From: Chlorokybus atmophyticus
Taxonomy: Eukaryota; Plantae; Mesostigma and Chlorokybus algae
Length of the DNA: 64,000 nucleotides
NCBI GenBank assembly: GCA_009103225.1
Contig: RHPI01002533.1
Location: forward strand, 84,123 to 148,122
Reading direction: 5' to 3'
The notes beneath the pieces were generated by a model that saw only the letters and a program-made list of their open reading frames with translations, was not told where the DNA came from and did no database searches. Shown here piece after piece: positions 2,852 through 60,770 of the stretch (position 1 is the first letter of the stretch; each line of letters begins with the position of its first letter). Both the position numbers and the translations under genes were made by a program.

Positions 2852-2852
2852 A

Positions 2853-3886: not shown

Positions 3887-3945
3887 ACGTAGCAAAGCCT
3901 TTTCTTTTTTACATCAACCTATAGCTAATTAGCGTTGATGGCTGA

Positions 3946-12959: not shown

Positions 12960-13380
12960 TTCTCAAGCTGTTTTTGAAAGAAATTTCCAGGACCAAGATA
13001 TCAACCGCAACCAGCTCAAGTGCTGGTTGCGGTTGATATCTTGAAATCAGTCATACCTGCCTATGGGGGCTAATGCTGTGGCCTCGAAGGATTCTGCAGG
13101 ACTCTGCTCAAGTGCCGGGTGCGGTTATTATCTCAGCATCAGTCATACCTGCCTATGGGTGCTCAAGCTGTGCCTCTGAAAGAATCTGCAGGACTCATCT
13201 CAAGCACCGATTGCAGTTGTATCTAGCATCACTATTACCTGTCTATCTGATTTCAAGATAGTCTGAAACTCCATAAGCAATGCGACGCAGTTGATTGTAT
13301 TCTAGCATAACTAATGCCTGTCTATCTAATTTGCAAGATAAGTAGTTTGAAACACCATCAGCCATGCGACACAGTTGATG
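12960..13380. repeat. Degenerate ~80-93-bp tandem repeats with a perfect 22-bp hairpin
   Basis: ATCAGTCATACCTGCCTATGGG recurs at ~13046 and ~13138, and CCTGTCTATCT recurs at ~13237 and ~13318. The hairpin spans 12994-13043. Confidence 0.8.
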
Positions 13381-14423: not shown

Positions 14424-16010
14424 CTAGCTCAACACTTTGGTTCCAGGTTCCAAAACTAAGTGCTTATCAAACAGCACCTCAACGTCTGTCAGCGCCTTCA
14501 CCATGAAGTCAGGCACTTCTTCGCCCTCCAACATGCTGCCATCACCGTAGCGGTCTTCAGTGTCTATCAAGCACGTAATTGCACCAGCTCGCCTTCCGCA
14601 AACAACCTGGCAGTACCCATAAGACAAACCAATTGAGGCTACTCACAGTGTGAACAGTCACAACATGTACACACGCGACACTCTGCCGTAACATGGCCTT
14701 TGCAACAGCTTACATCATCTTTCGCGCTGTCGCCAATCATCATCACTTCATGCGTGCTGAAGCCCCATTGTTCGCAGATGTTCATGAGGGGAGCAGCGTG
14801 AGGTTTGTAAGGCCGAAACTCGCGACTCAAAGCAGGGTTGAATGGCGGAGCCTGCGCAATCCAAAGCATGCACTGGTCAGCAATGCTGCACCGAAAAAGT
14901 GCAAATTGCGCACATGGCACAACATACGCATGCTGCATCAGATGTACCTGAAAGTGGCTGTGAAAGAATCGAACTGAAGCATCAACATTGCGAGTAATCA
15001 ATCCTCGTCTGGAAACCGGACCAGATATCAGTTGCTTGAGCTGACATGGTTGTGAGCAACATGGTCTCGTTCTAGTGTGCATGTGCAAAGCAGTCATTGC
15101 AGATGCCTGCCGTTCTCTCTATGCTCACCCAGTAGGGTATCAGCAAACCACTGTGACTGCGCACCTGATACCTTTGTCATCCAGATATCGACACAACTCC
15201 AGAGCTCCTGCAAGGGCAACCAGATCACTTGTTACTTATGTACCGTTGAACAGGGTTGCAAAGCAGTTGGTGCATGCGAAAGGGCCCGCATGGCACCCTG
15301 ATGTTTGTTTGGCAAGCTGGCAATAGAGTTTTCAGTTTTTCAAAGCACCTGGCATAATCTGAAGCCGCTCGTTTGCTTCTGTCTCTACTTCAGTAATGGC
15401 AGCGTACGCCAACTTCTGCCGCTCCGGGTCACCCCAGCTGTCAATGACTGTCAGAATATCACCGGTCAGAATGCCCACCTGCCATACGTCTATCATCACA
15501 GAGACACAACACACAAAACAGCAGCTGAATCCAAAACGAACAACGACATATCCAACTAGCCTAGGTGAGTTTGCTCCCAATCAGCAGCATTGCAGACCCT
15601 AACCCTAGTCGGCAAGTACCAGCCGACGTGTGCCACACAGCATGCTGCGAGCCACTCACGGCATGCAACGGACATTCCACCACTCCACAACTTGGCCCAA
15701 TCTAAGGCTTCAACAGCACGCATTTATAAGGAGGTATCATGACCTATTGCACGACCACACTCCTGTTCACCCGCTTGCGCATGAGCTCGAAGTCTATGCA
15801 TGGCACAGTCAGCGTCCCGTCCATATCAAATACAACTCCCCTCACTCTCCGCCGCTGCTGCAGCAAAGAATCGCCTTCCCCGGCCCCATTAACGGCACCA
15901 TTGCCGCCATTGCGGAACACCCTGTGGCCGGTAGCAGTGGCCATGCCTGCCGCAACCCTCGCAGGCCCCCTCAGCAGCGCCGCCGCCGCCGCCGCAGCCA
16001 CGGCGGCCAT
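14424..16010 (-). CDS. HAD-superfamily hydrolase (At2g33255-like), probably organelle-targeted, multi-exon
   Basis: Motif I VVFDMDGTLT, GLITRN, KPHAAPL and motif IV MMIGDSAKDD..GRRAGA across GT-AG exons. Ala/Gly/Arg-rich N-terminus. Confidence 0.9.
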
Positions 16011-16327
16011 AACGCTGAGGACATGCACAAGGTTCAGTTCAGGCTCAGTAGTACTTAGATCACTGAGGCGCACAGATCACTGGGATCAGCTACTATTCAC
16101 AGGAGCTCAAAGTCGGATCATGACGGGATCAGTTTTCCCACGCTGCGGCGGCCTGTGTTACGTAACACAGATACGTGACGCAAACTGTGTTACGGCTTTG
16201 TGCGGCGGCGGCGGCGCGGCGGGCGGCGGCGGCGCTGGTGTGAGGGGAGGCGGCGGGTTGGTTGGTGGAAGCGGGATTTTGAACTGTTGCGTTTGCAAGG
16301 AGCTGCAAGGGCTGGTTTACCGTCACA

Positions 16328-38389: not shown

Positions 38390-40223
38390 ATGCGGGTGTG
38401 GCTGGACTGCGATTGCGGGGTAGACGACGCGCTGGGCATCCTGCTTGCTCTCTGCCTGCCTGAGGTGGGTACACTGGCGTGTGCATGTGTGGTACATAGC
38501 TGCATGACTTTGCGCGATAGTCAAGCTCAGAGCGTCGACTTTCTTGCCACACAGGCTTGCCTGAATGCTTGCACTGAACGCCTGACACTGGCACCTTCGT
38601 GCATGCTGCGCAGGTTGAAGTGGTTGGCATCTCCTGCGTTGCTGGCAACGTTGGCGTGGAACAGGTCAGAGAACCTGGCATACGTTTGACACTGACAGGC
38701 AGCTTGTCGTGATGTGCGTGCAAATGGAAGCGTGCGTGAGCTTACAGTGCATGCAAGACGTTCAGTGTGTACATCTGCATACACGCTTGATGTTGCTGCA
38801 TGCAACAGTACGCTTGGAGCAATCGCAAGTGGCTCGCTTAACATTGCAACAGCTGCACAATCCATGGCAATTGTGTTTGTTGCCATGCAGGTGGCAAAGA
38901 ATGTGGCACGCATGCTGACACTAGCCGATCGCGTAGATGTTCCATTCTACATTGGCGCCAGCGCCCCGATACTTGGCCCAAACGGCATCGGCAACAACGG
39001 GGTAAGCACGCTAGTCATCGATTGACTGGCGTTATTCAAGTCAGTGTGAAGGCGTGAACTGAAGTTGTCTTTTGGCAGTGGTTTGGAAAGGACGGTCTCA
39101 ATGATGCAAAGGATGCGTCACCGCACCCACACTCGGTGACAGCGTCTCCGTCTCCGGGTTATGCAAGTGTTCGGTTGGTTGAGGAGGCCAACAAGGAAGA
39201 CAGCCGAGACCTGGTTCTCATCGCAACCGGGCCGCTGGTATGCTGACTCTGCGATGTAACGCATGCAAGCCCCAATGTTGGTTATTGACACATATACAGG
39301 TTACATTGCACTACAGCATGCTAGTTGTGTACTGCATTACCGCCAGTGGGTGCATTGACGCTTGCTGATTGTGATGCTGTGCATCATCAGACCAACATTG
39401 CACTAGCATGCCGTCTGGACCCTGCTTTTCCCTCGCGTGTTGGACGGTTTTGCGTGATGGGTGGTGCGGTTGAAGCCCCGGGCAACACGCCCAACTCATG
39501 TACAGCAGAGTTCAACTTCTTATGCGATCCAGAGGTCAGTTTCTCAAGCTCTGCAGTTGGCATTTACACCACTTTGTAACAAGGCAGTTCAATGCCAAAA
39601 TGTGGTTGACACTCTGCTGCAGGCAGCATTCATCTGCCTACACTCCTTCCCAGACACCAAACTGCTGAGCATCGACTGTGCAGAGAAGCACCCTTTGTCA
39701 TGGCAGTGGTTTGAGCAGTGGATCAGCAAAGACACTGCCAAGGCAAGAGTACACAACGCTTTGCTCTTGAATAGAGCAGCCTTCGCTGCACTTGATGCAT
39801 TGAATAATTGCAACATATTGGTGCAGGCAGCCTTTGCATACGCAATCATGTGGAACTCCCGGGAGGCTGCCAGGGCTAGCAACGAGCCCGGTTGGGTTGC
39901 ATGGGATCCGCTTGCTGTTGCGGCTGCGTTGATACCCGGGGCAGTGCTCACATCTACCAAGTTCTATATTGATGTGGAGCTTGCAGGAAAACACACAAGA
40001 GGGCAGTGTGTTGTAGATTGGAAAGGGATTATGCGAAAGGAGGTGAGCTGTCTGAGCACGCTGTGTACGTGTCTGCACCATGTTCTCCACTCAGTTGCAG
40101 ATATGCTTGGCTGTCATGGACTGAACCTGGCTGGCGTTGTCCTTGTGGCAGCCTAATGTCACATTGGTGACATCAATGGACGACAAGCTCTTTCTGCACT
40201 GGATGGACGTTGCACTTGAGTGA
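38390..40223 (+). CDS. Inosine-uridine preferring nucleoside hydrolase, multi-exon
   Basis: DXDXXXDD motif (DCDCGVDD), GNV, FGKDGLND, ATGPL/TNIALA, MGGA..GN...AEFNFLCDPE/AA, WDPLAVA, VELAGKHTRGQCVVDW. Stop TGA at 40221-40223. Confidence 0.93.
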
Positions 40224-42999: not shown

Positions 43000-43490
43000 A
43001 CCACCATTACATGGACAAGTCAGTCACGCGAACCATAGGTGGTCACAACCGTCGTGACCACCAGTTCATAGCTCAGGACCACACTCGCGGCCATACGTCC
43101 ACAGTATGGCACGAACACCACAGCATATATAATCCGCCGTCATTACCTCGTCCATGGTTCGCGAACCATACTGGTGTGAATATAACGGAAAGTTACAACC
43201 AGTGTGGTGTAAATTTTCAGTGCCAATATGGTCATGACGTTTAAGCCATGCGTGGTGCAGACATTCACGACAAGAGCGGCATGACAGTCACACCGTATAT
43301 GGTCCACCGTCATCACCTCATCCATGGTTCGCGAACCATACTGGTGTGAATATAATTGAGCATCACAACCCGTATGTCATGACAGTTACACTAGTGTGGC
43401 CTGGCGTGCCCCACTCAGTATGACTTGGCAATTACACCACATGTGGTCTTGCATATCATTGCCAGTATGATATGACCGTCACACCTGTCA
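43000..43490. repeat. Degenerate subrepeat block: ~47-bp units plus two ~49-bp repeats containing a 16-bp palindrome
   Basis: 43137-43185 is nearly identical to 43307-43355, and each contains ATGGTTCGCGAACCAT. 43434-43485 resembles the 47-bp units at 53701-53848. Confidence 0.75.
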
Positions 43491-44340
43491 TGCCATCTAC
43501 CCTCGCATGCCAGTCCTTCTCGAGCATGCCTACACCCAGCCCCACGCCCGGGCTACCAGCATGAAGACCGCGCGAGCCCCAGCCTACTGCTAGCTACTGT
43601 ACCGCTCATGTAGCATGTAGCTAGGGCTACTTTATAGACCTGCCTGTAGGGACCGCGCGTAGCTGATCAGTTGTAAGTCTGTTAATGACACATGTGCTAT
43701 ATCGAGTCTTAGGAGATTTCCGAAATAGCATGAGGCCTCGATGTGACCGTTGGCCTAGTGCCCGCGTGGCACTGCACAGTCATGATTTGACATGTATAAG
43801 TAGGAAGTCACGTCACCGGACTAGCTGGTGACACTGTAAGTGAGTACTAGGAGTACCAAGAAGTAAAGACTTTGTTTCTAAAGAGCTTGTGAAGCGACTT
43901 GAACTGGAAGCACGCTGCCCCGGTTGCCAAGAATTCCCTTACTGCGTGAGACACGGTGCATGCTCTTGTGCGATGTGCCTGTCATTGCTGTGAGCTTGAC
44001 GGTGGTGTGTTGTTTCAGTAGTCAGGGTGTTGTATCCACGTGTTGCACACTCATTCACCTCACTTAACAGTGTATCATTCTATCCACTCATGCAAAGAAC
44101 TGTGTCCACAGCACTACCTATCGTAGTGGCTTGTTGACTTACAGTGTCACCCTCTTTGCACAAGTGAGTGTGTTGCGATCTGCATTAGATAGTGCAGTCT
44201 GCACCCAGGGATAGATCGCTGGGCATTCGTTATCATTGTCATCACATAGTGCGCACAAGCACTAATGTGTTGGGTGGTAACAGCATCACTATAGACGGTA
44301 GAGCACAAGCACTCTACCCTTTTACCTCTGGACCAGCTGT

Positions 44341-46180
44341 ATGAGCAGGCCCACCCCGTTCTCCCCAATAGACGAGGGTGACCTCAGCAGTCGGAGCCCA
44401 ACCACCAACCTCACCTACGAGCGGACCAGTGACGGGAGCATCGACCGCAGCAGCAGAGGCTCGCGCTCCATCTCCAGCTTCACCCCGCTCCACTCTACTC
44501 CTCGTCATCAAGCTTCTCCACTATCATCGGACAGCGACGACAACGAGATGGAGTCTTCCTATTCAACCACATCCCTGCGCTTCTCCGGACGTGCCGGCAC
44601 CACCTCGCTGGATGAGTTCATCATCAAGTTCCACTCCAAGATGCGGCAGAAAGCTCTGAAGAACAAAGACTGGTCAGATGAGATCTCTTTCCACATTGCT
44701 GCTCAGTATCTTGATCATGAAGCACACGATGTCTGGAAGTCCGTTGCTGAACTGCATCGAGTAGACGGCTATGGCGAGCTTGCCAGCACCATAGCATCTG
44801 CATCTCTGCACCGTCCAGCAGGTGTCGTTCCACCTGCCACTTCAGTTGCAGTAACAGGCTTGTCCATAGCTGCAGCTCTCAAGCAGGCAGAGGAGGAGGA
44901 ACCAGAGTTGGTACTTGTCAACTTTACCCCTGCAGAATTTGAGTCCAAGGAGGCCACAGTCGAGTCCGCATCCTTGACCGTTCTGCCATCATCATTGAGG
45001 AACAAAGAGCTGTACAGCAAGCGGCAGCCGCAGAGTGGGGTACTCCTCTACCTCCAGCAACACCTGGCTCTCGTGCAGGAGGCAGCGCTTTCACCCTCGG
45101 GTCAGTAGCACTGCGCGCACCAGCCATCACCGTAGGTGCTGCCATCTCTGATTCTCCACTCAAGGACCTGTACGCTGCCCTGCGCCGCACCTTCCCTTCT
45201 CAGACCACCACCAAGGTTGAGGAGCTGAGACGCTTCCGACGCAAGCCCAATGAGGATCCCCTCCGCTTGTACTCCAGACTGGAAGGTCTGCTGAAGGACA
45301 CTGACTACAAGATTGTCAGTGAGGAGGCTGCTGCAGTGATATACGCCAATGAGTTGGATGCTGCTCTGAGCGAGTCGACACGCCCGACTCCGAACTACAG
45401 CAGGCCCCTTGGTTACACCCTCAAAGAAGCCTAGAGACTGCACAAGCCATCCACAAGCGCTTGGTGTATGAGAAGGCAGTGCTGGACACCAACCGCAGCG
45501 CCGCACGGCCTGTAGTCAGCACGACAACTGAGCTTCCTCGCCGCGACCGTGGCCGGGACGCTCCACCAGCACGCGACAAAGGGAAACGGTCAGCTCATGC
45601 TGCACTTGCTGCCCCTGTGCTGTGTCATCGCTGTGGACGGCATGGGCACTACCAAAAGGAGTGCACCGAAGAATACTCAACTTTGGTTTGCGACCACTGT
45701 CACAAGACTGGTCGTTTGGAGTCAGTCTGCTGGCTCAAGTTCCCAGAGTTGAGGCCCGCCAACAGCTACAACCACAACTACTCCGGTGGCTACAACAGCA
45801 ACAACACTGGAGGCCACACTGGCAACAACTTCAGTGGCTACAACAGCAACAACACTGGAGGCCACACTGGCAACCACTTCAGTGGCTACAATAGCAACAA
45901 CACTGGAGCCCACAATAGCAACAACGCTGGTGGCAGTAACAACTACAACAACGCCAGTGTTCGCAAGGAAGAGCAAGGCTACAGGGGGAAGAATAGACCT
46001 CCTCAGCGTAAGGGACCAGAGACACGTCCGCGCGTTGCTGCTGTTGCCGCCAAGGCTTCATCCAACCCACCAGCTGATGACCATATGGCAGCCCTGATGG
46101 CGCGTATGGCACGCTTGGAGGAAGACAAGGAGCAGGACTACCGCGCCTGCCCGATGGGCGCTGGTGGCTGCAAAACGTGA
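44341..46180 (+). pseudogene. gag: Gag (frameshifted near 44975 and 45430) with two Zn knuckles and N/G-rich repeats
   Basis: LDEFIIKF..W..IAAQYLDHEAHDVW; LRRFRRKPNEDPLRLYSRLEGLL (frame missing from the ORF track); CHRCGRHGHYQKEC and CDHCHKTGRLESVC. Confidence 0.8.
45788..45915 (+). repeat. In-frame 48-bp tandem repeat (GYNSNNTGGHTGNNFS x ~2.6)
   Basis: Units at 45788-45835, 45836-45883 and a partial unit from 45884. Confidence 0.92.
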
Positions 46181-48399
46181 GAGAGACAGGACCACTCCGT
46201 CCCGCGTGCAACCATCACGACGAGCACGGGGGGAAGCTGCAACAACATCAGCAGGCACCTCCTCCGAAGCCACCAGTGGGGCTGCCTCCGCAGCAACAGC
46301 CACACCGGCTACAACGTCGACTCCACCAACGTCAGCGGCACCCACTCCAGTTGCACCACAACCTGGTACACCGATGGACACCGTGACACCGACACTGGTG
46401 AGCACAATGGCAACAGTCGCCATCTCTACCGAATCTGCACCAGCGAGCGGTGCACTTCCCACTGCAGCAGTGCCTCTGCCCGTAGGCGTTGAGACAACTC
46501 TCGCACCACCGACCGGTACCGTCGCAACTGCCACAATTGCCATCATCGAGCCCGCTGTCTCTGCAGCAACGCGCGCAGCCACTCTGCCCGCTCTCGACGT
46601 CACTCAGGCTGTCCCAACTGGTCAGCAAGCTGAGCGAGCATGAGAGACCGTCCTGCGCGGAGCAGACCCCACTACCATCGCCTTCGGTCGGGGGGGGGAG
46701 CGCACCACGCGTGTCGCTCGCGATGATCGCGTCTTCCCGCTACCAGAGGTTCACACCCTTCCAGCACTCACTCAACACCAACTGGAAGATGAGATCCTTG
46801 CTGGCACTGCACCTCCGATGCGTGACAGGGTGTTTTTGATCAGCTACAGCCCACCGGTAGTGTTGGAGTTGGCCCTGCAGCTGTTCTGGGCGCTGCACAA
46901 CAACATGCAGACCGCCCCGCACCAGTCTGCACGCATGCCAACCACCACCTTTTAACCCAGCCCGCTGGACACGTATCGGGACCGCCGAGACACCGTCCAG
47001 CAGCGCATCGCCGACGCAGCCGACCTGCCTTTGGGCACTGATGAAGCACTCGGACCTCCTACAACCGCTCCCCTTCATCAGCGCTACCACGCACTGGAAC
47101 AAGCATATCATTGGCGACAGGATCAAGCTGCCGCCATTGCTGCACGTGAGCAAGCTCTTGAAGCTACGCGTGCACCAATACCTCAGTCACCAACTACTGG
47201 TCCATCCTCCAGCACCACTCCGCTCTTCGTCGAGACCAACTCTGACCAAGCGAGGGCGTTGGCTCAACAAACCAGGGGGGTGATCGCCCCGTTGCTGCCT
47301 GCGCTGGTGGAGGATCTACCTGAGGACCAAAGGGAGCCAGGGAGGGGCTACCTTACACCACAAGGGTGTACACAAAGAGATGGAGCAGGACTGGTTGGAG
47401 AGCAACAACTACGCACTGCTCTGTTGCGACAAGCAACCATGCTGCATCGGCAAGAAGGCATCGGACTTCGGCAGATGCTTGGGATGCGAGACAATGGCAA
47501 CGCGGCACGCGCACGGTTAGTGACGTGGCTGGTCACCAACCATCCCGCAGTCCCGTTGTTCGCTTTCGGCGCCAGATTAGCGTGGGTGGACGCATTCCTT
47601 CGCTCCATACGGCAAGCCTATGATGAAGTGGCTTCCGCCGCCACTGACACTCTGGAGGGAGCTCTGGAGGCGATACTGAGTTTGCCAGGAGTGGAGGCAG
47701 GACGTCAGCGCAGGCGCATCGCCGCTGCTTACGAGCAGCATGTCCAACAGCCAGAGACCCGCCTCACTGTATGCACACGAGCAATAACAGTGCTGGAAGT
47801 GGGAGTGGTCAACGGCAGATGGGATGCTTACATGGCAGGGATCCTCAGGGTGCCCACCATCACCCACGACATGAGAGCGCGGCTCCTACGCGCAGTGTAC
47901 CTGCAGCCCATGCCTCAGAACCATCGCTATATAGACGTGGACAACAATGCGACGGCGACATGGGAAGGTACACTAGTCAGAGAGGCAGCCCATGCCGTGC
48001 GATGGACCTATGCAGAGGAGCAGGCTGCACGAGAGGCAGTCCCGCAAACACCAGGTCCTCCAGGGTTCCCGCTACAGCCACTGGCCACTCCTCCTGGCAT
48101 GACAACAGCTGCACGGAGGGTCAACCCTCCTGCACCTCCACTTGGACAGTTTGCAGCAGCACCTCCAGTGCCTAGGCCACCACGCGTGTACCAGCAACCG
48201 CGACAAGGACGGTTTGGACAAAGCCGAGGACAAGGAGGTCCACAAGATTCATCAGGCAGAGGAGCCCTGGCTGCCCTGCGGTCAGGCCCCGCAGATGAGA
48301 GTAAAGCAACAGTCTCTCCACGCAAGAGGTTCCGTCGCTGCAAGAGGCTGCGCATCAACGCTAATGCAGCCATGATCGCCAACCAAGGCAAGCACGTGA

Positions 48400-48760
48400 T
48401 CGTCAATGGGCGGGCACTCAAATGCGTGATGCTGGACACTGGAGCACAGCCCGTCATCATTGGGCGCTACCTCGCACGAGATCTCGGCATCACCAGCGCT
48501 GAGCTGCTTCCCTGTCCCTACCAGCTGGACACCGCAACCGGCAACCGCGACAAGGTGCTCGGCCTTACCAAGCAGGCTGTGAGCATCCGCCTCACCGGAC
48601 TAAACCCTTCCCACAGCACCGAGATTGTACAAAGGTGTGTGGTCACCGATGCCGGGTCCTTTGACCTACTGCTGGGACAGGACTGCAACTTCCCTGTCGG
48701 CATGGGGATGGACTGCTGGACTGAGCAGGCATGGTTTCGACCGCATTGGGATGAGGATGA
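48400..48760 (+). CDS. Aspartic protease domain of the polyprotein
   Basis: CVMLDTGAQPVIIG (DTG at 48435-48443) ... FDLLLGQDC. Confidence 0.85.
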
Positions 48761-49139
48761 TGGAGAGGAGCAGGGATTCCTACCTCTCGAACTGGTGGCC
48801 AAGGCCCGCTCGCAACGAAGGTCGGCCGCAGCAGCCACCTACAGTCCTATAAAAAGCTCACGTGTGCCTCGTGCCCGAACGCAGCCGAGGACAACTGCAA
48901 CGAGCTCGAGCCTAAACGCTGAAGAGGACTCTCCTACACCGTACGATGAGTCTCAGGAGACTGTCACAAAAGAAGTGGCCTTTCAGGAGCCATCCGAGCG
49001 TCGCTGGAGCGCACAAGTAGCAGCACACATGCTACTGACCAGGCCTCAGCTCACTGCACACTTCCCTGTCTACAAAGACCAGGCTACAGTGCAGGAGCAG
49101 TACCACATAGCTACTGGAGTTGTGGAGTTCCACATGTTC

Positions 49140-50100
49140 CGCCGACAACAAGGCATCACCGTGCTGGAGCTGTTCGGAGGCATAGGCAGTGGGCTTGCGG
49201 CTGTCCTCAACACAGGAACAACAGTCACCAAGTACCTCTACTGTGACCCTGACCCTCATGCACAGGAGGCTCTGAGCCATCATTTACGACAGCTGCACCA
49301 GCGCTACCCGCAGCAGTTACCGCTGTCGGCACTGCAAGGGAGCCAGAAGGCTCTGCCGCAGGACATCCGCTGGATTATCAAGGATCACCTGCAGGCAGTC
49401 GGCAACATTGACCTGCTGATAGCAGGATGGGAGTTTCAAGGGCACTCCAGGGCAGGCAGAGGCCACGGGCTCTCTGATCCTCGCTCACAGCTGTTCTGGG
49501 AGCTAATGAGAGTCGTCAAACTCCTGCAGACCAGTCAGATCGCTAGGCCCTTGGGCTACATCATCGAGAATGTGCACTCCGAGGATGACAAGCGGCATCA
49601 CGTCGCCAAAGCTTATCGACAAGTATGCTCCTTGCTGGGGCATCCTCTCAAAATCAACGCCGCACGTCATGGATCTCGCGCACACCGCGTCCGCGCCAGT
49701 GGACCAACCTGGCCACTGCGGAGGACCTGTTTCTGGCAGAATACCTATACAGCAATCGGCCACGAAATCTCGTCGTCGATGACATCCTGGACCCTGGACG
49801 CACAGCGCAACCGGTCACACGCCTTGACCACCACCACTTCTACCAGTGCAACCAGCCTGGTCAGCCGCGCCGCGCACTACCCACACTTGTATCCTATCCA
49901 GGCTCCTATGCGTTCCGCAATGGAGGCGACGGCATGGTGTTAGACTCCAACACTTGACAGCTGGAAGAACCCAATGCCCGCGAGTGCGAGCGTGCTATGG
50001 GATTCTTTCCAGGCAGCATCACAGGCTCCACGCTGACAACCAGTCAACAGTGTCAGTTGTTAGGGCGCGCCATGGATCAAAACAGCATGGTGTGGTACTT
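49140..50100 (+). pseudogene. Cytosine-5 DNA methyltransferase domain inserted between protease and RT
   Basis: Motif I VLELFGGIG (49167-49187), IDLLIAGWEFQGHS (motif IV position), LSDPRSQLF, motif VI YIIENV (49566-49574), and R-V-R then WTNL after a 1-nt frameshift near 49698. It continues LPTLVSY and EPNARECERAMGF...LLGRAMD (motif IX/X-like). There is an in-frame TGA at 49955. Confidence 0.9.
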
Positions 50101-50399
50101 GGAAATGTGCTTTGCTCTCCAGGACCGCCATGTGTCCTTCCAGAAGCTCGAACACCTGGCTGTGGGGTGGATTGCTCGCTTTTCAGAGACCAAAGCAGCA
50201 CACACCGCCCTCGAGACCGCCCATATGGAGGAGCAGGCAGCAGTCACTGTGGAAGACATTCCAGTGGTCGCCAACGCTACCTCGTGGTCACACGCCATTG
50301 GACCGCTAGCCATAGGCCAGACTCGAGAGCAACTCGAGGCTCTCCTCAACAAGTGGAGGAGCCAATTCAGCTTCAGTGTGAAGGAGCTGGGCATCTGCT

Positions 50400-51700
50400 C
50401 AGCATACCAGATGGACATTGAACTAGTGGACACCGAACCGGTGTTCAGAAGACAGTACCGCCTCTCCAAGCTAGAAGAAGACTTGGTGGAACAGAGGTGC
50501 AAGGCGCTGCTAGATGCAGGCCTGATCGAGGAGTCCACATCGGACTTTGCGGCCGCGACCGTCATGCCCCTGAAGAAAGATTCAGCAGGCAACTGGACAG
50601 ACCGGCGCATGTGTGGCGACTATCGCCCCCTCAACAACAAGACCAAGCAGGACAGGTATCCAATGCCTACCGCAGAAGGCATCTTTGACGATGTAGGAGA
50701 CTGCACGGTCTTTAGTATCCTGGATATGCGCCAAGGATACAACCAGATCGCTATCAAGGAGGAGGACAAGCACAAGACTTCCTTCTGGGGAAACCGGCAG
50801 CTGTACCAGTGGAAGGTCATGCCCTTCGGACTGAAGAACGCTCCGGCCAAGTTCCAGCGCGTCATGGACAAAGCCCTCAAGGGGTTGGACTTCGCATGCT
50901 GCTACATCGACGACATCCTCATCTTCAGTTACAGCAATGAGGAGCATCTACAGCACATCGAAGAGGTGCTACAGAGGCTGAAGGAAGTCGGGATGACGGT
51001 GCACCCTGACAAGTGCACCTTCTTCACCCACAAGGTACCCTACCTAGGACACATGATTGTGCCCCATGGGGTGTACGTACAGCAGGCCAAAGTGGAGGCG
51101 CTGGTGGCTATCCCTGCCCCCACAGACCTCACGCGGCTGCGGGCCTTCCTCGGCCTTGCCAACTATTACCGCCGGTTTGTCAAGGACTTTGCCAAGATCG
51201 CAAGGCCTCTCAACGAACTACTGAAAAAGGACACCGGGTTCTTGTGGAAGGAGGCACAACAGGAGGCCTTTCAGGAGCTGAAGCTCCGCCTCACCACAGC
51301 TCCCATTCTGCAACGCCCTGACTACACCAGGTCGTTCATCCTGCACACAGACTGGAGCAAGCTCGGCATGGGGGCCGTGCTCGTACAGCACGACGACAAC
51401 AAAAAGGAGCGCGTAGTGTCGTACGCCAGCCGCAGTAACAACAGTGCTGAGGCCAACTACAGCAGCTACGAAGGGGAGTGTCTCGCCGCAGTGTGGGCCA
51501 TCTCCTTCTTCCGACCCTTCCTGTTTGGACAGCAGTTCCAACTGGTCACTGACCATCAACCCCTCAAGTGGTTAATGAACAACCAGCATTTGACAGGAAA
51601 GTTAGCACGATGGGCGCTGCTGCTCCAGGAGTACGACTTCGAGGTGGAACACCGCGCAGGCCTTGCCAACCAGGATGCGGATGGCCTCAGCCGTAACCCC
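50400..51700 (+). CDS. pol: Reverse transcriptase and RNase H
   Basis: RMCGDYRPLN, LDMRQGYNQI, MPFGLKNAP, YIDD (50903-50914), LRAFLGLANYYRRF, LHTDWS, ECLAAVWAI, TDHQPL and EHRAGLANQDADGLSR. Confidence 0.96.
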
Positions 51701-52090
51701 CACCTCAGCACCAACGACGCCACAGGCGCCCGACATGAGTTGGGTCCTACAGCTGCACCTTCAGGTGTGGCCACCATGTTCGCTGTCGCTGCGCTACGCT
51801 TAGGACGCAGGACTCAGATCGCTGAGGCAGCAGCAGATGGGGACATGCCCGCTCTCGAGCCCGCCATCACCACCACCGATCCTTTATCAGAAGAAGCAAT
51901 CGCCGCCGACCCTGAGGTAGATGATGAGGAGCTGGCACCCACCGACACACAACAAGACATCTGGCTGGACGAGCCATCCCTCGCACTGCTTCAGACTGGA
52001 CAACTTTCAGCAGGCATGAGCGCACGCGAGAAGGACCGCGTCCGGCAACGCACTCAGCGTTACCGCTGGGCCAACGACAGGCTGTATTGA

Positions 52091-53220
52091 CGGATACAAG
52101 ATGCAGATCAGGAGGTCCCCACACCAACTGCACGTGAAGGCATCATCTCCTCCCTTCACACCGAGCTCGGGCACTTCGGTGTCAAGCGCACGGTCAGCCT
52201 GGTCAGGACCCAGTACTGGTGGTAGGGGGTGCACAGACAGGTGCGGGAGTTCGTCAGCAACTGTCAGCAGTGTGACATGGTTCGCGCCAGCCTCAACACG
52301 CACAACGCCACCTTGCATCCCCTTCCCATTTTCGGGTTGTTCTACCGCTGGGGACTGGACATCCTCGGAGACCTAGCGCCCTCAGCGCGAGGCAACCGCT
52401 ACATCCTCGTCATGATCGAGCACTTTTCCAAGTGGGTGGAGCTGGTGCCCCTGCCCGACAAGAGCAGTGAGGGAGTAGCCCAGGCTTTCCTCTCCCATGT
52501 ATTCGGACGCTTCGGCAGCTGCGCTGAAATCATCACCGACCAGGGTACGGAGTTCAGAGGAGCCTTCGACAAGCTTATCGACAGATGCTTCATCGACCAC
52601 CGTCGCACCTCACGCGACCACCCGCAGGCCGACGGCCTCGCCGAGCGTACCGTGCAGACCATCAAGAAGGCACTGCGCAAGTACGTCCTTGCCTACGAGA
52701 AGAATACCTGGGATGATCACCTCCCATGGGTAGCAATGGGCTACCGGCTGTCCAAGCAGGCAGCCCTGCGAGAGTACAGCCCATACTATCTACTGTTCGG
52801 AAGGCAGCCATTGCTCCCTTTCCGCGCACAGCAGGAGGTCGACAGAGTGGTGGACAATCTCGACAACCCCGACGAGATGGTGTATGATCTGACAATGCGC
52901 AGTGCGCTGTTCGAACACACAGTCCCCATGGCCTTCAACAACTTGCGCATCGCGCAGCACCGCGACACGCTGCGTTACGAGCGTGTGCGCAGTGGTTTCT
53001 ACAAGGAGCGGGAGCGCCGCTTCGAGTCAGGAGACTTCGTCTACCGTATGGCGTCTACACGCGACACCCTCGATACCTCCGTCGGGCGTGCTGTCTACAA
53101 GGTATTGAAGGTGCACCCCACAGGGGTACTGGACCTACTGGAACAACGAGGCGAGCGCATGAAGGACAACATGGTCAACTGCGCGCCCTGTCATCTCCCT
53201 ACATTGCTGGCTTTACCAAG
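52091..53220 (+). pseudogene. Integrase (HHCC + DDE core), interrupted by stops at 52088 and 52223
   Basis: HTELGHFG..YWW*GV..NCQQC; WGLDILG, IITDQGTEF, GLAERTVQTIK and PYYLLFGR. Confidence 0.93.
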
Positions 53221-53253
53221 ATCCAGCACCCGCGTCCGCTGCGCAGCACCCGA

Positions 53254-53419
53254 TGCGAGAGTGTGGCAGCGCCGACGACGACCCATAGATGATGTTATGC
53301 GACGGCTGTAATCAAGGCATGCATGCTGCTACTGCCTTGACCCTCCACTGGACGCAGTACCCTTGTGGGAGTACTGGTGCGATGACTGCCGCATCAACGG
53401 TCCCCCACACAGTCGGTAG
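53254..53419 (+). pseudogene. PHD finger at the integrase C-terminus (2 frameshifts, 1 stop)
   Basis: Reconstructed as CE.C-GSADDDP*MMLCDGCNQGMH/CYCLDPPLDAVPLWEYWCDDC-RINGPPHSR*, which has C4-H-C3 spacing. Confidence 0.85.
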
Positions 53420-53700
53420 GAACTGAGTTCTGGAGCAGAGGGCTACCCCAGAATCTCAGGGGGGGTGGCTTGTTGACTGTGTGCACTACGACACAGTCTG
53501 TACACAAAGGTGGCGAGCAACATCGGCTCGTCCACTGCACTAAACACCGCGTAGGCTCATCTTCAAGCCTATGCCCACGATTGGGGGGTTGTCTTTTGCT
53601 TACATGACTCCAATGCAATGCACGGCACTAGCNGTGCAGCACTAGCACTCCTCCGCAGCCTGTCCGAGACAAGGTTGCCCTCGACCATGGCAGGCACGAC

Positions 53701-53848
53701 ACACCACATGTGATCTTGCATGTCATCGCCATTATGGCACGACAGTCACACCACTTGTGGTCGTGCATGTCACCACTAGTATGGCATGACAGTCACGCCA
53801 CTTGTGATCATGAAGCCCGTGATCAGTATGACATGACCAATACACCAC
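53701..53848. repeat. 47-bp tandem array (3 units plus a partial unit)
   Basis: Units start at 53701, 53748, 53795 and 53842 (ACACCACATGTGATCTTGCATGTC...GACAGTC). Confidence 0.9.
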
Positions 53849-54384
53849 AAAAGGTGTAAACCGACACCACCAACAGAGCCACGACTGCCATGCCATTGGT
53901 GGTGCTAACATTCAAGACCATATGTTTGCGGCATTCATACCATGCATGGTCACAAATGTACAGCGGTTTGCCATAAGCATTCGCAACAATTGCGTCACAC
54001 TGACATTTGCAAATCGCAATACAGCTTCTTATGAATTGGCAGAGTGCTAGTACCTTATGTACTAAATGCAACTACAGCTTCAGGGTGCACATCTCTGCTA
54101 TTAACTCTATCCATCAGTCGCTTACAATTTGGTTGACTGCAACTTGCGGCAAGGTGCACAGCACTTCTCCAGGGCTGCCTTTATATTCATCACGTACTCA
54201 GCACGCCAGTGCACTCCGGATTTCTTCTTGTGTGTTGACCATGAGCAACTGTTTTCTCTAGTACCCAGCTGATCCAGCGTTTTTTCTCAGCAACCCTTAC
54301 CAACTCATCGACTCCAGGGGGTCCATATGTAAGTAGTGTATCGATTTTTGCACTTTTTCCTGCTGCAGCCAAAGCTTGGTTTGG

Positions 54385-54740
54385 TATCTAGCTGCTATTA
54401 AGGTCAAGTAGTTGGTGTGTACTAAGTTCGGTATCCGTCTGTTTTTGAACTGCATAATGGCCATATCCGTCTTTTTTAATCATGTATAAAGGGGATCAAT
54501 CTTAATGCGCGATTCAACCAAAAACGCTATGGCCGCAATTCGCGACAAAAACCTAAGATATCTAGCTGCGATTAAGGTCAAGTAGTTGGTGTGTAATAAT
54601 TTCGGTATCCGTCTTTTTTTTAACTTAATAATGGCCACATCCTGTACTATTGTTTTGTTCGATCACATATTAAGGGGATCATCTGAATGCATGATCCAAC
54701 AAAAAATGTTATGGCCGATTTCGAAGCAAAAACCCAAAAG
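54385..54740. repeat. ~174-bp AT-rich tandem duplication
   Basis: TATCTAGCTGC.ATTAAGGTCAAGTAGTTGGTGTGTA begins at both 54385 and 54559, and similarity continues through the units. Confidence 0.88.
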
Positions 54741-54984
54741 CCGCAATGCAGGGGAATTTTGCAACTTCGTCGCCGAGTTCTAAACCTGCGCGGACAAGCC
54801 TGTCGGATTAGCAAGCAACAACCTACGACCTAGACCATGACCAACTAGATTACGATGACACAAGACACTCTGCGACGCATTTGTACATAATATATCCTTT
54901 ACAACAGCAGCCTCAATTGTCTCACGTGCCGCAAGAAGTGTTAGATGGATTGCATGCATATATCACGCAACACATGCACTAACA

Positions 54985-55085
54985 GCTACATACAGTATAT
55001 ATGTGTGTACATGTATATATATATATACATATATGTGTGTGTGTATATACATATATATACATATAAGATATATGTATACGGCTAT
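54985..55085. repeat. (TA)n/(TG)n microsatellite
   Basis: Alternating TA/TG/CA run. Confidence 0.9.
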
Positions 55086-55679
55086 CAATACCGGGATTTT
55101 TGTTCTTGAAATGTAATCGTGAGGAGAATTACGGTAATGTCGGTAACATGAGGATGAAGAATGTGTTAGACCTGCCGTCCCGTCCAATCGCAGCGCTTAC
55201 TTACCGGCAGATGTTTGCATTGGATTCCCTGAGTCACCTGTTTTGGCAAGGTTGTTTGCGGTGAGTTGGGGAAGTCCTTAACTCTTGTGCTAGTGCTAAT
55301 CATAACACATGCAACTAGCAGCCTTTTACACGTGCTTGCTGGCCCCGCGGCCTGCTACTAGCAGGGCGCGGGGTTGAACTTGGCAACAATGAGGTTGTGA
55401 AATTGTTAAGGTTCGTCACAGTGCAAAGTAATAATTGTACCACACACCTTGTTAGGTATACATTCTTGTACTATTGACGGACCCAATCAAAACGTAAATG
55501 ATTATGTGTATAGCTTTAGCATGCAGCGTCCATACGTAATGTTGCCGCGTCCTCAATTGCGTTGGGGAGTATAGTCGCATTGATGATGATTTGGTTACAA
55601 TTGTAATCTGGATTTACACAAGCCTTTCTCACGACCTAAACCACAAGCCTTTCTCACAACCTCAACATTTAATTACGTT

Positions 55680-56200
55680 AACGCCAAGTCCTCAACGTCA
55701 TCTTCCTTTGTCATATTGAAGACAACAACGTCATTCAAGTAAACCATGGCATGTTTGCCAAGCATGTCACTAACGATTTTATTCATTTCCTTCTAAAACA
55801 CCGCGGGCGCATTTGTCAATCCAAAGAGTAACACTTTATATTGCTAATGGCCTGAGGATGTTCTAAATGCTGTCTTGTAGACATAAAAAGGATAAATGCG
55901 GATTTGGTGATATCCGCTTGTTAAGTCCAGCGTACTGAACTACGCATTTTTCGACAACCTATTAAACACATCATCAATCCTTAGCAACGGGTATCTGTGG
56001 ATTACCGTGATCTTGTTTAAAGCATGGTAATCCACACACATGCGCAACTTCCCATTCTTTTTCATCACAAACAAGATAGGCGCGCCGAAGGGTGAAGAAT
56101 TTGATTCAATCAGCCCCTTTTCCCATAACTCTTTGATTTGAGATTCCATTTGCCCTCTCTCGTTAGGGCTTAACCTCTTATGGTCGAAATGGAGGCTCAC
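55680..56200 (-). pseudogene. pol: Gypsy RT fragment
   Basis: SSPFGAPILFV.KK.GKLRMCVDYHALN, LDLTSGYHQIRI, FGLTNAPAVF and VYLNDV, with stops. Truncated after the YxDD equivalent. Confidence 0.9.
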
Positions 56201-56816
56201 TACTAGGAGTTAAAGGTTGTGTGTCCAACACCTCGACCAGGGGGCAAGACTAGCAATTCATCTGAGAAAACATCTTGATATTTCTCAATGATGTCCGCTG
56301 CAGATTCTGTATTTCGGGTACGACATCATGACTTGATGTCAAATGTACCAGAACAGCCGGTGTGTTTTTACGCAATGCACGTTTCACTTGCAGTGCCGTG
56401 AGAACTGCAGGGTCCATTTGCTTGTGTTCCAAGCTAAGCGACCCTTTAACGGACAGTGAAATCCGCTTGCGCCCCTTTTTCACTGTACACAATCGTACAG
56501 CAGTGTCCAATGTCGTCCAATCGCTTTCCCCCTCCCTGCGGCTTGGTCGAAGTTGCCACTTGCGACTTGTCTTGCATAGCCGCAGAGTCATCATTGTACA
56601 ACAACACACTCAACCTCTGCAGGGTTGCGAGGTCATCGAGCACCAAAGGCTTTCCCGTAAATGTGTTGTACTGCAGCTGATCGCGCAGACGCGCCTCCAA
56701 CCCGCGCTTGTGATTGTCGAACTGCTTAGCCTTGTCCATAGGCATAAGTCCACTGTACACGTGACCAATCAATGCCTGGAAATCCTGCAGATAGACTGAA
56801 GCCGCTCTGCCATTTT

Positions 56817-58414
56817 CATCGCAAATTTTACACGGTGACTGACAAGGGACTGAGGGGGACTGACGGATGCCTGACCCTGCCTGACCCTACCTGACGTAAC
56901 GGATTGGTTCACAAAAGGGACTTTTTAGGACGGCCGTCACTATCAAGCAACATATACCAACGGCAAGCGGTCGACCGATAAGTACAATTGACGGCGGCCT
57001 GCCTGTGACGGCAACACCGCACTTCAAGGTAATGGCCGATTGTCGGTCGTCCCAGTTGCGCGATGGCGACCTTTCTGTATAGCAGATAAGTCACGATTTG
57101 GTCACATACAGTGACGGCCGACCGTCGGTCGTACCCTGACCGTCGAAAAGTATGTGCGACGGCTGCCTACTTTGGCAAGCCAATCACCGTTAGTCCCTAT
57201 TCGGTGACCTTACCGCATTTATTAAGTGACGGCCGATCGCCGGTCGTGCACTTAACGCGGCGGCGACCTACTTATTGTGTGTCAAGTATGATAAGCAAGT
57301 GACCGCCGGTCCCAAAAGGTCGGCAAGTCGGGACAGTGGTACCGGCCGGCAAGTCGAGACGCTGGTACAATGCAGCCGCCGTACTATGTCAATGGTACAA
57401 ACAGTGCCATTGTCGCAATGGCACTATCGTACCATTAGTATGGTACGATAGTGCCATTGCAACAATGGTACTTTCGTATTATTATAGTAATACGATAATG
57501 CCGTTGCGAGTCACGTTCGACGACGCGTTTAGATAACTTGGGCTGCTCAAGTTATTCAAACGCTCAACGGCTTCAAGTTGAACAAAGCGTTGTGGGCGGC
57601 GGCGGCGGTGATGGCGGCGGTGGCGGCGGCGGCGGCAACGGCTAACAGTAGGTGAGCTTGGTTGCTGTCTGACGTTGTACTACGTGCAACACCGCATGCC
57701 ATCTAACCACCCTCCTTGCCTTAGGGCGGCCAGGCCAGGCCAGGCTAGGCCAGACTAGGCCAGGCTAGGCTAGACCAGGCCAGGCGGTGGCAGCGGCGGC
57801 GGAGAAAGAACGGCGGCGGCGGAGCCGGAGCGGGCGGTGCAGGAGCCGCAGCTCAGTACAAGGGTAGTACTAGCAGCAGTACCTAAGGTAGTAGTAGCAG
57901 TAGTGGTAGTGGTAGCAGTAGTGGTAATCTAGTTGTACTAGCAGTAGTAGTAGCAAATTTATTACATTGTAACTTATTTATTTTTTTGTTTATTATTTGT
58001 CACGCATTCTTACACAGCTGATGATGACAATCACGTGTGACACCTCATCATGACTGAGCGGTACCAGCAGGTACCTTTGAAGGTACACATCATTAACTTT
58101 AGGTACCTTAAGGTACCTGACAATTTCGCTCAGTTAGCGTACAGTTGTCGGTACCTAACTCATAGGTACCGGTCAATTATTTGTTAGTTAGGTCAAGTCC
58201 CCTTTGCTTAACTGTTGAGTACCTGGCAGGCACCTATTAATTAGGGTCAGTCCCTTTATGCATAACGGCCGCCAACTAATGGTGTCGGCCGTTATGCTCA
58301 GATCCCTGTATCGAGATCGCCAGTAGACTGAAAGTCGACAGTCAAAATGAGTATCCTCAGGTGCACGGCCGTTGCAAAAATTCAGTCGGCCGGCAGGGGA
58401 AACATTTTGCGACG
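56817..58414. mobile_element. ~1.6-kb non-autonomous TIR DNA transposon nested in gag
   Basis: It splits gag codons LRQ|NGRA. Ends are CATCGCAAAT.. and ..ATTTTGCGACG, with an apparent TT duplication and subterminal repeats (GACGGCCG on the left, GGTACC on the right). No coding capacity. Confidence 0.8.
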
Positions 58415-60287
58415 TTGCCGTAGCTTGCTGAGCTTGTTGCGAGCAGCAGTGGCCTGGTCCATGCCACCATAGCGCTCCACCATGAACTGGAACAGTGCCT
58501 CCAACCTGTTGGAAGCACCATCCGCACTTTGTCTCGCCCAACCCCAACGCATCAGATGGCATGAGCTCAGCAATGTGCTCGTTGATTGGGCGCTGAAATG
58601 CTGCCAAGTACCGCTGGATAGTCATCACCCAATCATGAATGTTGACAGTACCGTTGGGCTTGAACTTCTCAGGCTTGTTCAGTGCTGTGACAGGCATCCC
58701 CGCCGATGAACCACCCACTGTTGTGGCAGCTCCAGCCACTTGCTGACGTAGAGCCACCAACTCAGCCTGCATCGCGTCAAGGCGCGCCGTCAACCGTTCC
58801 TTACGAGCCAAGCGTTCTTCCAAGTCAGGCCCAAAGTATCGAAACAGATCCTTGCAGCGCTTCTAAGTCTTGCCTGTCAACATGGCCAAAGCCTCAAACG
58901 CCATCCTATCACCCGAGAATGGGTCTGGCTTGTCCCAAGTGGCCATGAGGGTAGTTACTGCTGGATCAATGCGCACGAGTGGTGGAATGTTCTGAGTCAA
59001 CTCGTGCTCGGGCATTTGGATCACTATCTCTTTGCTTGCTTGAGGAAGTGTTGCGAAGTCTGCCTCATATCCATGGCGGACTATTGTTGCCCAGTTATCC
59101 CACACTTCATTGGTCATGCGAGGGCAGCGAGCAACAAGCTTTGCTCGCCCTTGTGCATATTTCTCAATGGCCCCACCAATGACAAGTAAAGGGTCCACCG
59201 TTGCAGCACCATGAGAGGACGAGCCGGAAGCTTTAGCACTTTCGTGCTTCGAGTTCTCCTCTTATTGCCACCCTTGCTCTCGCTCTCACGCGAAGAGCTC
59301 TTGTTCACTTCCTCCTCATCACTTGATGGCTCATATGCGGATGAGGACAAGCTTGGCATAGGGGTACCTCTCTGCCTGTTCCCCTTCCCCTTGGCCAGAC
59401 ATCTGCCCAAGAAAGAAGTCGTAAGAGAATGAGTGTTTAAGTGCACAACCACACTAGTTGTGCACTTAAGAAGTGCTGAAACTTATGGTTTCTTCCTTGT
59501 TGATTTCAAGGTGCTGTACTTGGGTAGAACAGCACGTACACTGACTGCCTAACACCTCTCAGTAAGATGCTTGCTTGTAAACAAACCATACGCAAATTGA
59601 CGCGACGATTCACAAGATATAGCAACTCAAAGTTTTCACTTTGTCCATCCAGCTCAACTTACAGTTTTAAATGACATAAAAGGTGCCAAACTTTTGTTGA
59701 ATCAGCCCTACAGGCTAATATCGACAATTATGAGTCGTGAGTTTGATATTGACCGCTCAAAATGAAATTGGCGGCCCCACCGCATTGAATGGCGGCCAAA
59801 ACATCCCAAGTTGGCGCTAGACTGTTTTCTTGCGGTGGGAGAAGTGTAAACAACCACAAACCCCTCCTTACACCACAACGAATTCACGCGGTGGCAGCCC
59901 CAACCACGAGCACACTCACAAGTAATACATAATGTGATTACAAGTGATGTGCTGGGATGCAATGCTTGAGGTGAGGTTGCCTGAGTGGCCGCCTCGCCTT
60001 CACACTAACAAGCTATGCTAGGCCAGGGCAGCTAGGCTAGGCTAGGCTAGCAAGCAAGCAAGCAAACAAGCAAGCAAGGCTATGCTACACCAGCAGCAGC
60101 GACAACAACAACAACAACCACATTAACAACTACCACTACCCACTCAAACTCGTGGGTAGCAGCTGCTAGTGCTGCCGCCTGGCACTGCTCAGTGCCGCCT
60201 GCTGCCGTCAATCGCTGCCGCTGCCCCTACCACCGCCAGAGCCGCCGCCGCCCCCACAACCCTTCACGCCCTTGCTCCAAAACCAAA

Positions 60288-60770
60288 TGTAAGAGAGAGG
60301 GTGTGCTACCGTCCGAATCCCCCACCCCAACACCGCCACCAGCCACGCCGACACCGCCGCCGCTCCCGCTGGGCAATTGCCACAGCGAAGATCCCCTGGC
60401 TATGGCGGCGGCTGCGTTTGAAGCGCCGCCATGTAATTGATATCGACGCGAGACTCATGTGTCATGTCGATATCAGTGTTGCAGATAAGAAACACTACAT
60501 TAGGGCCTTAACATTAGGTTAACGGCCCAAATCGTGACAATCCTCCCCAATTTACCCACGGGTTCCTCATTGTCTAATGAAGCACTTACTAGCCCACGTC
60601 GCCGTGGTCACGGCCGTACCACAATCGGTCTGCCCGCGGTCTTTTGGATCCGGCCATCCTCCCTGCGCGACCTGCCATCCGGCTTGATTGGCTGTATATA
60701 CCCGTTGGGACCCTTATACTACAGCATAAATAAGGGCGGGGAACCTTTATGGAGGTAGCACACCGTTACA
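60288..60770 (-). repeat. 5' LTR of family A copy 2, with a ~150-bp insertion
   Basis: Aligns with 2853-3198 except for the insert at ~60531-60679. Confidence 0.88.

Follow-up and report, generated by a model that had tools for sequence, protein, structure and literature searches.

Can one retrotransposon polyprotein contain, as parts of its own, both an enzyme that writes a chromatin mark and a domain that reads one? The question is raised by a locus in a stretch of 64,000 nucleotides from the alga Chlorokybus atmophyticus (GenBank assembly GCA_009103225.1, contig RHPI01002533.1, positions 84,123 to 148,122 of the forward strand), here called the window and numbered from its first letter. 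A reading made from the letters without database searches (the sequence-only reading) had proposed that, upon correction of six frameshifts and six in-frame stops, positions 44341-53419 join into one open reading frame (ORF) of a Gypsy retrotransposon encoding a C5 cytosine DNA methyltransferase (DNMT) together with a PHD finger. We consider it probable that 43486-53700 is a single old and dead Ty3/Gypsy-type insertion of the streptophyte Gypsy-DNMT3 lineage, lodged in a 47-bp satellite, with both extra domains inherited. With the same good confidence we hold that one frame formerly coded for Gag, a nucleocapsid, a long lineage-specific linker, an aspartyl protease (PR), a DNMT3-like domain, reverse transcriptase (RT), RNase H (RH) and an integrase (INT) with a C-terminal PHD finger.

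Reconstruction of the polyprotein

Read across its six frameshifts and as many in-frame stops, the plus strand of 44341-53419 yields Gag, a pair of zinc knuckles, tandem repeats, an orphan region, PR, DNMT, RT, RNase H, INT and PHD, along a chain of long ORFs whose frames succeed one another as 1>0>2>0>2>0>2. All six of the stops in the sequence-only reading were located (46641, 46953, 49955, 52088, 52223 and 53286), and homology on both flanks backs four of its six frameshifts (~45430, ~49697, ~53260 and ~53330); for the two at ~44975 and ~46135 the basis is overlapping open frames only. At ~45430 the Gag core lies in frame 0 upstream and the zinc knuckles in frame 2 downstream; tblastn with intact relatives places the break at ~49697 inside the DNMT and then follows frame 2 from 49700 to ~53400. 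The polyprotein stop codon (53417-53419, +) stands nine codons past the last Cys of the PHD finger, as in the relatives. The GC content of the element region, at 57-61%, is above that of its flanks.

Broken domains were read through with an X at each break. Pfam on the separate ORFs, tblastn with intact relatives and the family profiles applied to the read-through sequences all reproduce the domain order originally proposed. Its assignment to the Gypsy type likewise held, with Pfam RVT_1, RT_RNaseH and rve matches in the Gypsy order PR-RT-RH-INT and Gypsy polyproteins as the nearest proteins. Pfam delimits the aspartyl protease at 48396-48749 (+) within the ORF 47031-49940, and both the reverse transcriptase (RVT_1, 50597-51058, +, E 5e-35) and the RNase H (RT_RNaseH, 51245-51634, +, E 4e-37) within the ORF 49997-52087. 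The integrase (52157-53130, +) comprises an HHCC zinc region interrupted by the stop at 52223, an rve core at 52346-52621 (Pfam E 3.7e-9 in the ORF 52229-53308) and a C-terminal part; the stop at 52088 lies upstream of it. Pfam scans of the window and its relatives found no chromodomain, the PHD finger occupying the C-terminal position of the integrase, and those of the window found no tyrosine recombinase match, the integrase being of the rve type. The copy in the window cannot function, because it has accumulated twelve disabling lesions and bears a Phe in place of the catalytic Cys of the methyltransferase.

Relatives and the inheritance of both domains

The window genome is represented in this analysis by a single copy of the family; sources of relatives include Marchantia, an NCBI assembly pair (GCA_017884025.1 / GCA_017884045.1; L005/L006, 99.4% identical) and metagenome contigs, three of the latter with the full domain order described below. 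A filter-free search of 1.84 billion representatives recovered 914 proteins with E<=0.001, 428 of them with E<=1e-10 and the best 40% identical. Two architectures are seen among the matches, namely type A with the order PR-DNMT-RT-RH-INT and type B with RT-RH-DNMT-INT-PHD. The closest matches in a word-indexed search with the RT ORF are 56-59% identical, and the named hosts among its matches are Marchantia polymorpha, Calypogeia fissa, several Closterium species and Klebsormidium nitens. Many of these matches are RT-RH-INT-PHD proteins of ~1,050 residues. An interpretation of them as elements with a PHD finger only was dropped, since a Gag-PR-DNMT ORF lies directly upstream in all three contigs checked.

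The sequence-only reading had made its case depend on other family copies keeping both domains, and this they do. The full order PR-DNMT-RT-RH-INT-PHD is found in L001 (Marchantia, decayed), L002, L005/L006 (intact), L007 and L008, with RT-RH cores ~50-67% identical to that of the window, and in relatives the DNMT with RT, as well as INT with PHD, are contained within single high-scoring segment pairs (HSPs) or ORFs. From K. nitens, L009 presents PR-DNMT-RT-RH-INT as far as the contig end, and L010 presents PR, a DNMT with its two ends flanking a stretch of N, then RT, RH, INT and, in the same place as in the others, a PHD finger (47 bits in Pfam). L010 had been a candidate for an element without a DNMT, which was rejected as the gap consists of N, with either end of the domain preserved beside it. 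Two type-A elements from metagenomes, L003 and L004, end past the integrase without a PHD finger. In L003, 6.7 kb of a type-A element recurs after 8,043 bp (1336-8034 = 9379-16077) at 100% identity, owing either to a tandem or circular arrangement or to a collapse of the assembly over the terminal repeat.

In an RT-RH tree of 132 rows, obtained by a quick search and with several long branches, the type-B elements form one clade (SH-aLRT, i.e. approximate likelihood-ratio support, of 100). All type-A elements, including those of the window, L009 and L010, fall into one 63-row group with a moderate support of 87. The nearest neighbour of the window element is L002 (67% identity), and the elements devoid of PHD make up one subclade (SH-aLRT 99). 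The DNMT and PHD domains are ancestral parts of the lineage, with the PHD finger lost in one branch. They are integral to the element rather than nested in it, because they occupy the same positions in the relatives and have no termini or duplications of their own: on the possibility of nested insertion raised by the sequence-only reading, no internal termini or target-site duplications were found around either domain, and the sole duplication flanks the element as a whole.

The type-B order is represented by P0007, P0038, P0085 and ~40 other proteins, is common in metagenomes, and occurs in Scenedesmus sp. PABB004. A further feature of the type-A relatives is an ORF1/ORF2 boundary past the DNMT in L005-L009, of which the window element and L002 are devoid. 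It takes the form of an in-frame stop or a -1 overlap (L005 5408-5422, L007 4780-4810, L008 3411-3565, L009 4896-4936). In those relatives the DNMT would therefore be translated with Gag-PR, not with RT-INT.

The methyltransferase domain

The DNMT3-like C5 cytosine methyltransferase spans 49143-50125 (+), with motifs I to X, the frameshift at ~49697 and the stop at 49955. Its upstream portion is recognized by the Pfam DNA_methylase model in the ORF 47031-49940 (E 1.1e-6, 28.8 bits vs a cut-off of 22). Read through with X at the two breaks, it scores 422 bits against a family profile of 337 positions built from ten relatives, matching positions 11-336 with the motifs in their normal order, so that no part of the domain between motifs I and X is missing. 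In profile comparisons with solved structures, the family retrieves DNMT3A (2e-25), then DNMT3C/DNMT3B, the plant DRM2 (~1e-12) and the bacterial M.HhaI, and the window's own piece matches DNMT3A and DNMT3C only. The DNMT3-like assignment predicted for the window family in this way agrees with the published Dnmt3 assignment.

The catalytic motif IV reads Glu-Phe-Gln in the window, in a position occupied by Cys in all nine aligned relatives. In most of ten aligned members, of types A and B alike, this motif is Glu-Cys and not the usual Pro-Cys. This common departure is a pointer to a shared origin of the DNMTs of the two types, as judged from their sequences. Motif I, the catalytic Cys, ENV, RxR and motif IX/X are (nearly) invariant across members that are only 35-47% identical to each other. 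At the level of the family, one element does encode the C5-DNMT and the PHD finger that the sequence-only reading saw together, as the relatives attest; the window copy is dead and has lost the catalytic Cys.

The PHD finger

The C-terminal PHD finger, of the C4HC3 type, lies at 53254-53389 (+) and is broken by the frameshifts at ~53260 and ~53330 and the stop at 53286. Split over three frames, its separate pieces are not long enough to pass Pfam, attaining E 0.1 and 13 bits against a cut-off of 24. When the six frames of the 64-kb window are scanned with a 55-residue family profile, made from 69 different family proteins, these pieces rank first and second and align to adjoining parts of the profile. 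The finger joined up with X at its three breaks retains each of the eight zinc ligands and reaches 55.9 bits (E 1.6e-19). In the 69 proteins the finger forms the end of the protein, ~45 residues past the integrase, the zinc ligands are all invariant, and scores of 37-47 bits take family members past the cut-off of Pfam PF00628.

The family signature is MLLCD-x-C-x2-G-[WYF]-H-x2-CL-x-PPL-x2-[VI]P-x2-G-x-W-x-C-x2-C, preceded by an acidic stretch that follows the first CxxC. We take this combination to be of the type of KDM5, CHD4, AIRE and BHC80. Its nearest relatives of solved structure, among the 60 matches listed of 88, include the fingers of CHD4, KMT2D, ATXR5, KDM5A/KDM5B (PHD1), PHF12, WSTF, DPF3, PHF21A (BHC80), AIRE, BAZ2A/B and UHRF1. 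Most of these bind the tail of histone H3 with K4 unmodified. Among the same 60 listed matches there is none that we would recognize as a classical H3K4me3 reader (ING, BPTF, TAF3). By sequence, the finger resembles proteins that read the H3 tail unmodified at K4 and not those that read methylated K4. Of the H3-tail reading that had been suggested for this element, the type of domain stands as a prediction for the family, with unmodified K4 as the likely ligand rather than a methyl mark; it does not stand for the dead window copy.

Gag, nucleocapsid and the region preceding the protease

Gag occupies 44341-45430 (+), with its N-terminal part in frame 1 and a frameshift at ~44975 into frame 0; its core (45120-45332) weakly resembles ORFs that lie upstream in the Klebsormidium, Closterium and metagenome relatives. 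Past the frameshift at ~45430, two zinc knuckles are encoded in frame 2 at 45623-45730 (+), with a Pfam zf-CCHC match in the ORF 45461-46177: the first is a canonical CCHC knuckle and the second is degenerate, with Arg at the position of the His. They are followed at 45751-45950 (+) by ~8 tandem 24-nt units coding for an 8-residue repeat rich in N/G/S/T.

The orphan region between the nucleocapsid and PR (46098-48395, +) is in frame 0 after the frameshift at ~46135 and contains the stops at 46641 and 46953; from 46956 its frame runs uninterrupted into PR for 480 codons. From the zinc knuckles to PR the distance is ~770 codons, and the counterpart in L005 has only ~370 residues. No homologue of the region was detected among the relatives, the closest included, or among the top matches of the 1.8-billion-protein library. 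A word-indexed search with the 970-aa ORF also came back blank, which is uninformative, as the low-complexity N-terminal half probably swamped the query. The region is predicted with low confidence to be all-helical, its single-sequence AlphaFold model being poor (pLDDT, the predicted per-residue confidence, of 47.7).

Termini and insertion site

Upstream, 47-bp satellite units occupy 43369-43485, of which the last five nucleotides, ACACC (43481-43485), are the left copy of a duplication. The 5' non-coding terminal part (43486-44340, +), termed A, begins with TGTCATGCC, like the A repeat of the relatives, and includes at 44126-44139 a stretch of 13-14 nt that repeats the beginning of the 3' region B. 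Following the coding region there is a G-run polypurine tract (53457-53465, +), which is in the same place in four relatives, directly before their B repeat. The 3' terminal region B (53466-53700, +) ends in ..CACGAC(A), like the ..GACA of the relatives. The downstream flank (53701-53849) opens with the right copy of the duplication, ACACC (53701-53705), and continues as 47-bp satellite in phase with the upstream units. The element thus has termini TGTC.. and ..GAC(A), of the TG..(C)A type, with ACACC (or CACC) on both sides, and deletion of 43486-53705 restores two in-phase satellite units. Our interpretation is an insertion of 10.2 kb that duplicated 4-5 bp of its target site.

In four relatives the 3' layout is a G-run polypurine tract, a short B1, a longer A2 and then B2. 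An A1 is found at the 5' end of L007; in the family A starts with (GC)TGTCATG and B ends in ..GACA. L007 contains, between A2 and B2, an inverted 763-bp copy (9039-9801) of part of its Gag region (1827-2589), which suggests that a second, rearranged element can make up an 'A2..B2' unit. The satellite itself extends over 43108-43485 and 53701-53849, with a related 170-bp repeat upstream, and has a motif ..ATGTCATGACAG.. like the junction between the B end and the A start of L008-type members. It could be a preferred target or could derive from the ends of such elements.

Weighing the evidence

The proposal of one inherited element with a DNA-methylating domain and an H3K4me0-type reader has several observations weighing against it. 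No pair of long terminal repeats (LTRs) was found in the window by searches for gapless repeats, by blastn at word size 7 or by Smith-Waterman comparison against shuffles, which returned the flanking satellite and one end-to-end 14-nt match within the range of the shuffles. The terminal structure of the family is only partial in the window copy: the A2-B2 repeats present in relatives are absent, having been lost by recombination between B repeats or never having been there. The satellite unit resembles the terminal motif of the element, so part of what we call flank could be element-derived, and a single insertion in a satellite says little on target choice. On the functional side, the specificity of the PHD finger is deduced from sequence similarity, the mostly Glu-Cys motif IV enjoins caution about catalysis on DNA, and a yeast assay of the DNMT domain of a K. 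nitens Gypsy element detected no methylation, a result that its authors call inconclusive (PMC5890265).

The missing LTR pair, along with the heavily mutated state of the copy, might be taken to mean that the locus is a chimera, either an ordinary Gypsy element upon which DNMT and PHD fragments landed independently or an assembly joined to host exons. We regard this as very improbable, as both domains are in frame with their neighbors, recur at the same positions in L001, L002, L005/L006, L007, L008 and a K. nitens copy, and share single HSPs or ORFs of relatives with RT and INT respectively, with the sole duplication surrounding the whole element; for practical purposes the relatives refute it. 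Yet more remote is the idea of a host gene domesticated from a retrotransposon polyprotein. A long frame with chromatin domains is what such a gene would display, but there are twelve disabling lesions, a target-site duplication and a location in a satellite, and the polypurine tract and transposon-like termini have been kept.

The alternatives that concern function deserve more weight. It is unlikely, though to be taken seriously, that the DNMT-like domain of the family does not methylate DNA and instead serves another step of the life cycle, in a binding or structural capacity or as a methyltransferase of RNA. The negative yeast assay and the Glu-Cys motif speak for this, but human DNMT3B was likewise negative in the same assay and a Ka/Ks (the ratio of nonsynonymous to synonymous substitution rates) of <0.2 has been published for the K. 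nitens copies (both from the same source). The near-invariance of the motifs listed above at such low overall identity also argues against it. Less likely still, the PHD finger could read H3K4me3 or no histone at all, and so direct integration to active chromatin or serve in protein-protein contacts. PHD fingers are versatile enough to accommodate this, but no classical H3K4me3 reader was recognized among the listed structural matches, the signature with its acidic stretch is of the KDM5/CHD4/AIRE/BHC80 type, and bromo-like targeting of 'active chromatin' is reported to be rare in transposons.

Predicted roles of the two domains

For the functional members of this Gypsy-DNMT3 lineage, the most likely role of the PHD finger, by analogy with the chromodomain, would be to tether integration to H3K4me0 chromatin. 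Chromodomains direct Gypsy integration (Gao 2008, as related by papers citing it). The PHD finger would play the part that the chromodomain has in chromoviruses, tying the complex of integrase and cDNA to nucleosomes with H3 unmodified at K4, and might thereby keep new insertions clear of active promoters. The DNMT3-like domain, released from the polyprotein or acting within it, would place 5-methylcytosine (5mC) on the cDNA of the element or on the new copy, which would then resemble host-methylated DNA. Methylation of the cDNA or new copy is likewise the role that we deem most likely, in line with the self-methylation of cDNA hypothesized for DNMT-bearing retrotransposons (PMC5890265). The sequence-only reading had suggested methylation by the element of its own cDNA or target; for the cDNA the suggestion survives as a published hypothesis for such elements, tempered by the yeast result. 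The window copy itself performs neither targeting nor methylation.

Genomic surroundings

The exons of a nucleoside hydrolase gene at 38390-40220 (+) each show ~92-100% identity to a protein of Chlorokybus (JGI 'Chlat1'), intron read-through being allowed for, and a TORTIFOLIA1-like ORF, which fits a host of the plant lineage, is located at 6572-7804 (-). The two genes jointly indicate a Chlorokybus-like streptophyte alga. Another retroelement is present in two diverged copies (727-3198 and 56519-60770), 73-76% identical and in the same orientation; its ORF at 546-2072 (-) encodes Retrotrans_gag and a zinc knuckle. The window has ~52% GC, apart from AT-rich patches at 4001-6000 (GC 34%) and 54001-56000 (GC 42%), the latter enclosing a 174-bp tandem pair (54385-54737).

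Comparison with known elements

The closest published counterpart is "KnitGypsy-Dnmt3" from K. nitens (de Mendoza 2018, PMC5890265), and a 2026 preprint calls Gypsy-DNMT3 a streptophyte element (bioRxiv 10.64898/2026.05.21.726589). KnitGypsy-Dnmt3 shares with the window element the Gypsy set of domains, a polyprotein that houses a non-rearranged Dnmt3-like domain and membership of the same RT-RH group, and the K. nitens copies L009 and L010 have the order PR-DNMT-RT-RH-INT. It differs in that the RT-RH ORF of the window is only 43-51% identical, the host is Chlorokybus and the linker between nucleocapsid and PR is much longer. The PHD finger goes unmentioned in the accessible text and supplements of PMC5890265, though L010 has one; it could be drawn in a figure. 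A figure legend of the paper describes the K. nitens repeat structure as 'the same as that of a DIRS retrotransposon', and the relatives of the window element have DIRS-like split direct repeats. This arrangement, A1 .. B1-A2-B2 in L007, L008, L010 and L001, is shared with the DIRS/Ngaro/PAT elements, which however use a tyrosine recombinase, unlike the DDE integrase here; a target-site duplication of 4-5 bp flanks the window copy.

Like the chromoviruses, the present family has a small histone-tail reader at the C-terminus of a Gypsy integrase, with a presumed role in the choice of target site; the reader here is a PHD finger with unmodified H3K4 as its likely ligand, as opposed to their chromodomain and H3K9me. 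The EpiLTRs of Cymbomonas and Euglena (2026 preprint), which combine DAM, DNMT and a chromodomain in LTR elements, also unite a DNA-methylation writer with a chromatin reader in one LTR retrotransposon. Their DNMT, however, is sister to DNMT4 and lies at the 3' end of pol, in contrast to the DNMT3-like domain between PR and RT here, their reader is a chromodomain, and an adenine methyltransferase is present besides. Type B, as in the 'pol' of Scenedesmus sp. PABB004, has a homologous DNMT with the Glu-Cys motif IV and a homologous PHD finger at the same distance past the integrase, but places its DNMT between RNase H and integrase, belongs to a separate RT clade and has one named host, a chlorophyte.

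PHD fingers are described as frequent in the retrotransposons of green algae and widespread in retrotransposons at large, and as a common accessory domain in Chlamydomonas transposons (PMC8557442, PMC6673714), and chromatin readers captured by transposons have already been surveyed in the literature. In the literature searched, the pairing of DNMT3 with PHD is not stated, although figures may show it, and neither the two domain orders nor the host breadth is stated; no paper combining Chlorokybus, DNMT3 and a retrotransposon was found. The combination, whose possible novelty the sequence-only reading had left open, is not new in nature, because the Gypsy-DNMT3 lineage is published, in part, and a K. 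nitens copy bears the PHD finger. The window element is a new decayed member of a known, widespread Gypsy-DNMT3 family, not a new class. The family-wide pairing with PHD, the two domain orders and the host breadth may be the parts hitherto unreported.

Biological significance

Outside of transposons, the animal DNMT3A/3B/3L proteins with their ADD domain offer a parallel, in that a DNMT3-type catalytic domain and an H3K4me0-reading zinc finger are united in one gene product. The ADD domain reads H3 unmodified at K4. The predicted reader of the Gypsy family differs in being a canonical PHD finger with RT and RNase H lying between it and the DNMT, and processing probably leaves it on the integrase; no allosteric coupling is implied. 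We advance only tentatively, as a conjecture that may well fail, that the Gypsy lineage with DNMT3 and an H3K4me0-type PHD finger is far older and wider than one published alga, extending over Chlorokybus, Klebsormidium, Closterium and liverworts with a sister arrangement in chlorophytes. If this is true, a transposon would have rebuilt the logic of the animal DNMT3-ADD proteins, 'read unmodified H3K4, then write 5mC'.

Transposons with a DNA methyltransferase of their own upset the view of methylation as a host defence. The window copy extends the host record to the deepest streptophyte branch, and supplies both an insertion of clear limits, target-site duplication included, and an example of how such elements decay. 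If the reader travels with the DNMT across the lineage, the family would provide a concrete model in which target choice by H3K4 state is joined to self-methylation, with many intact natural copies.

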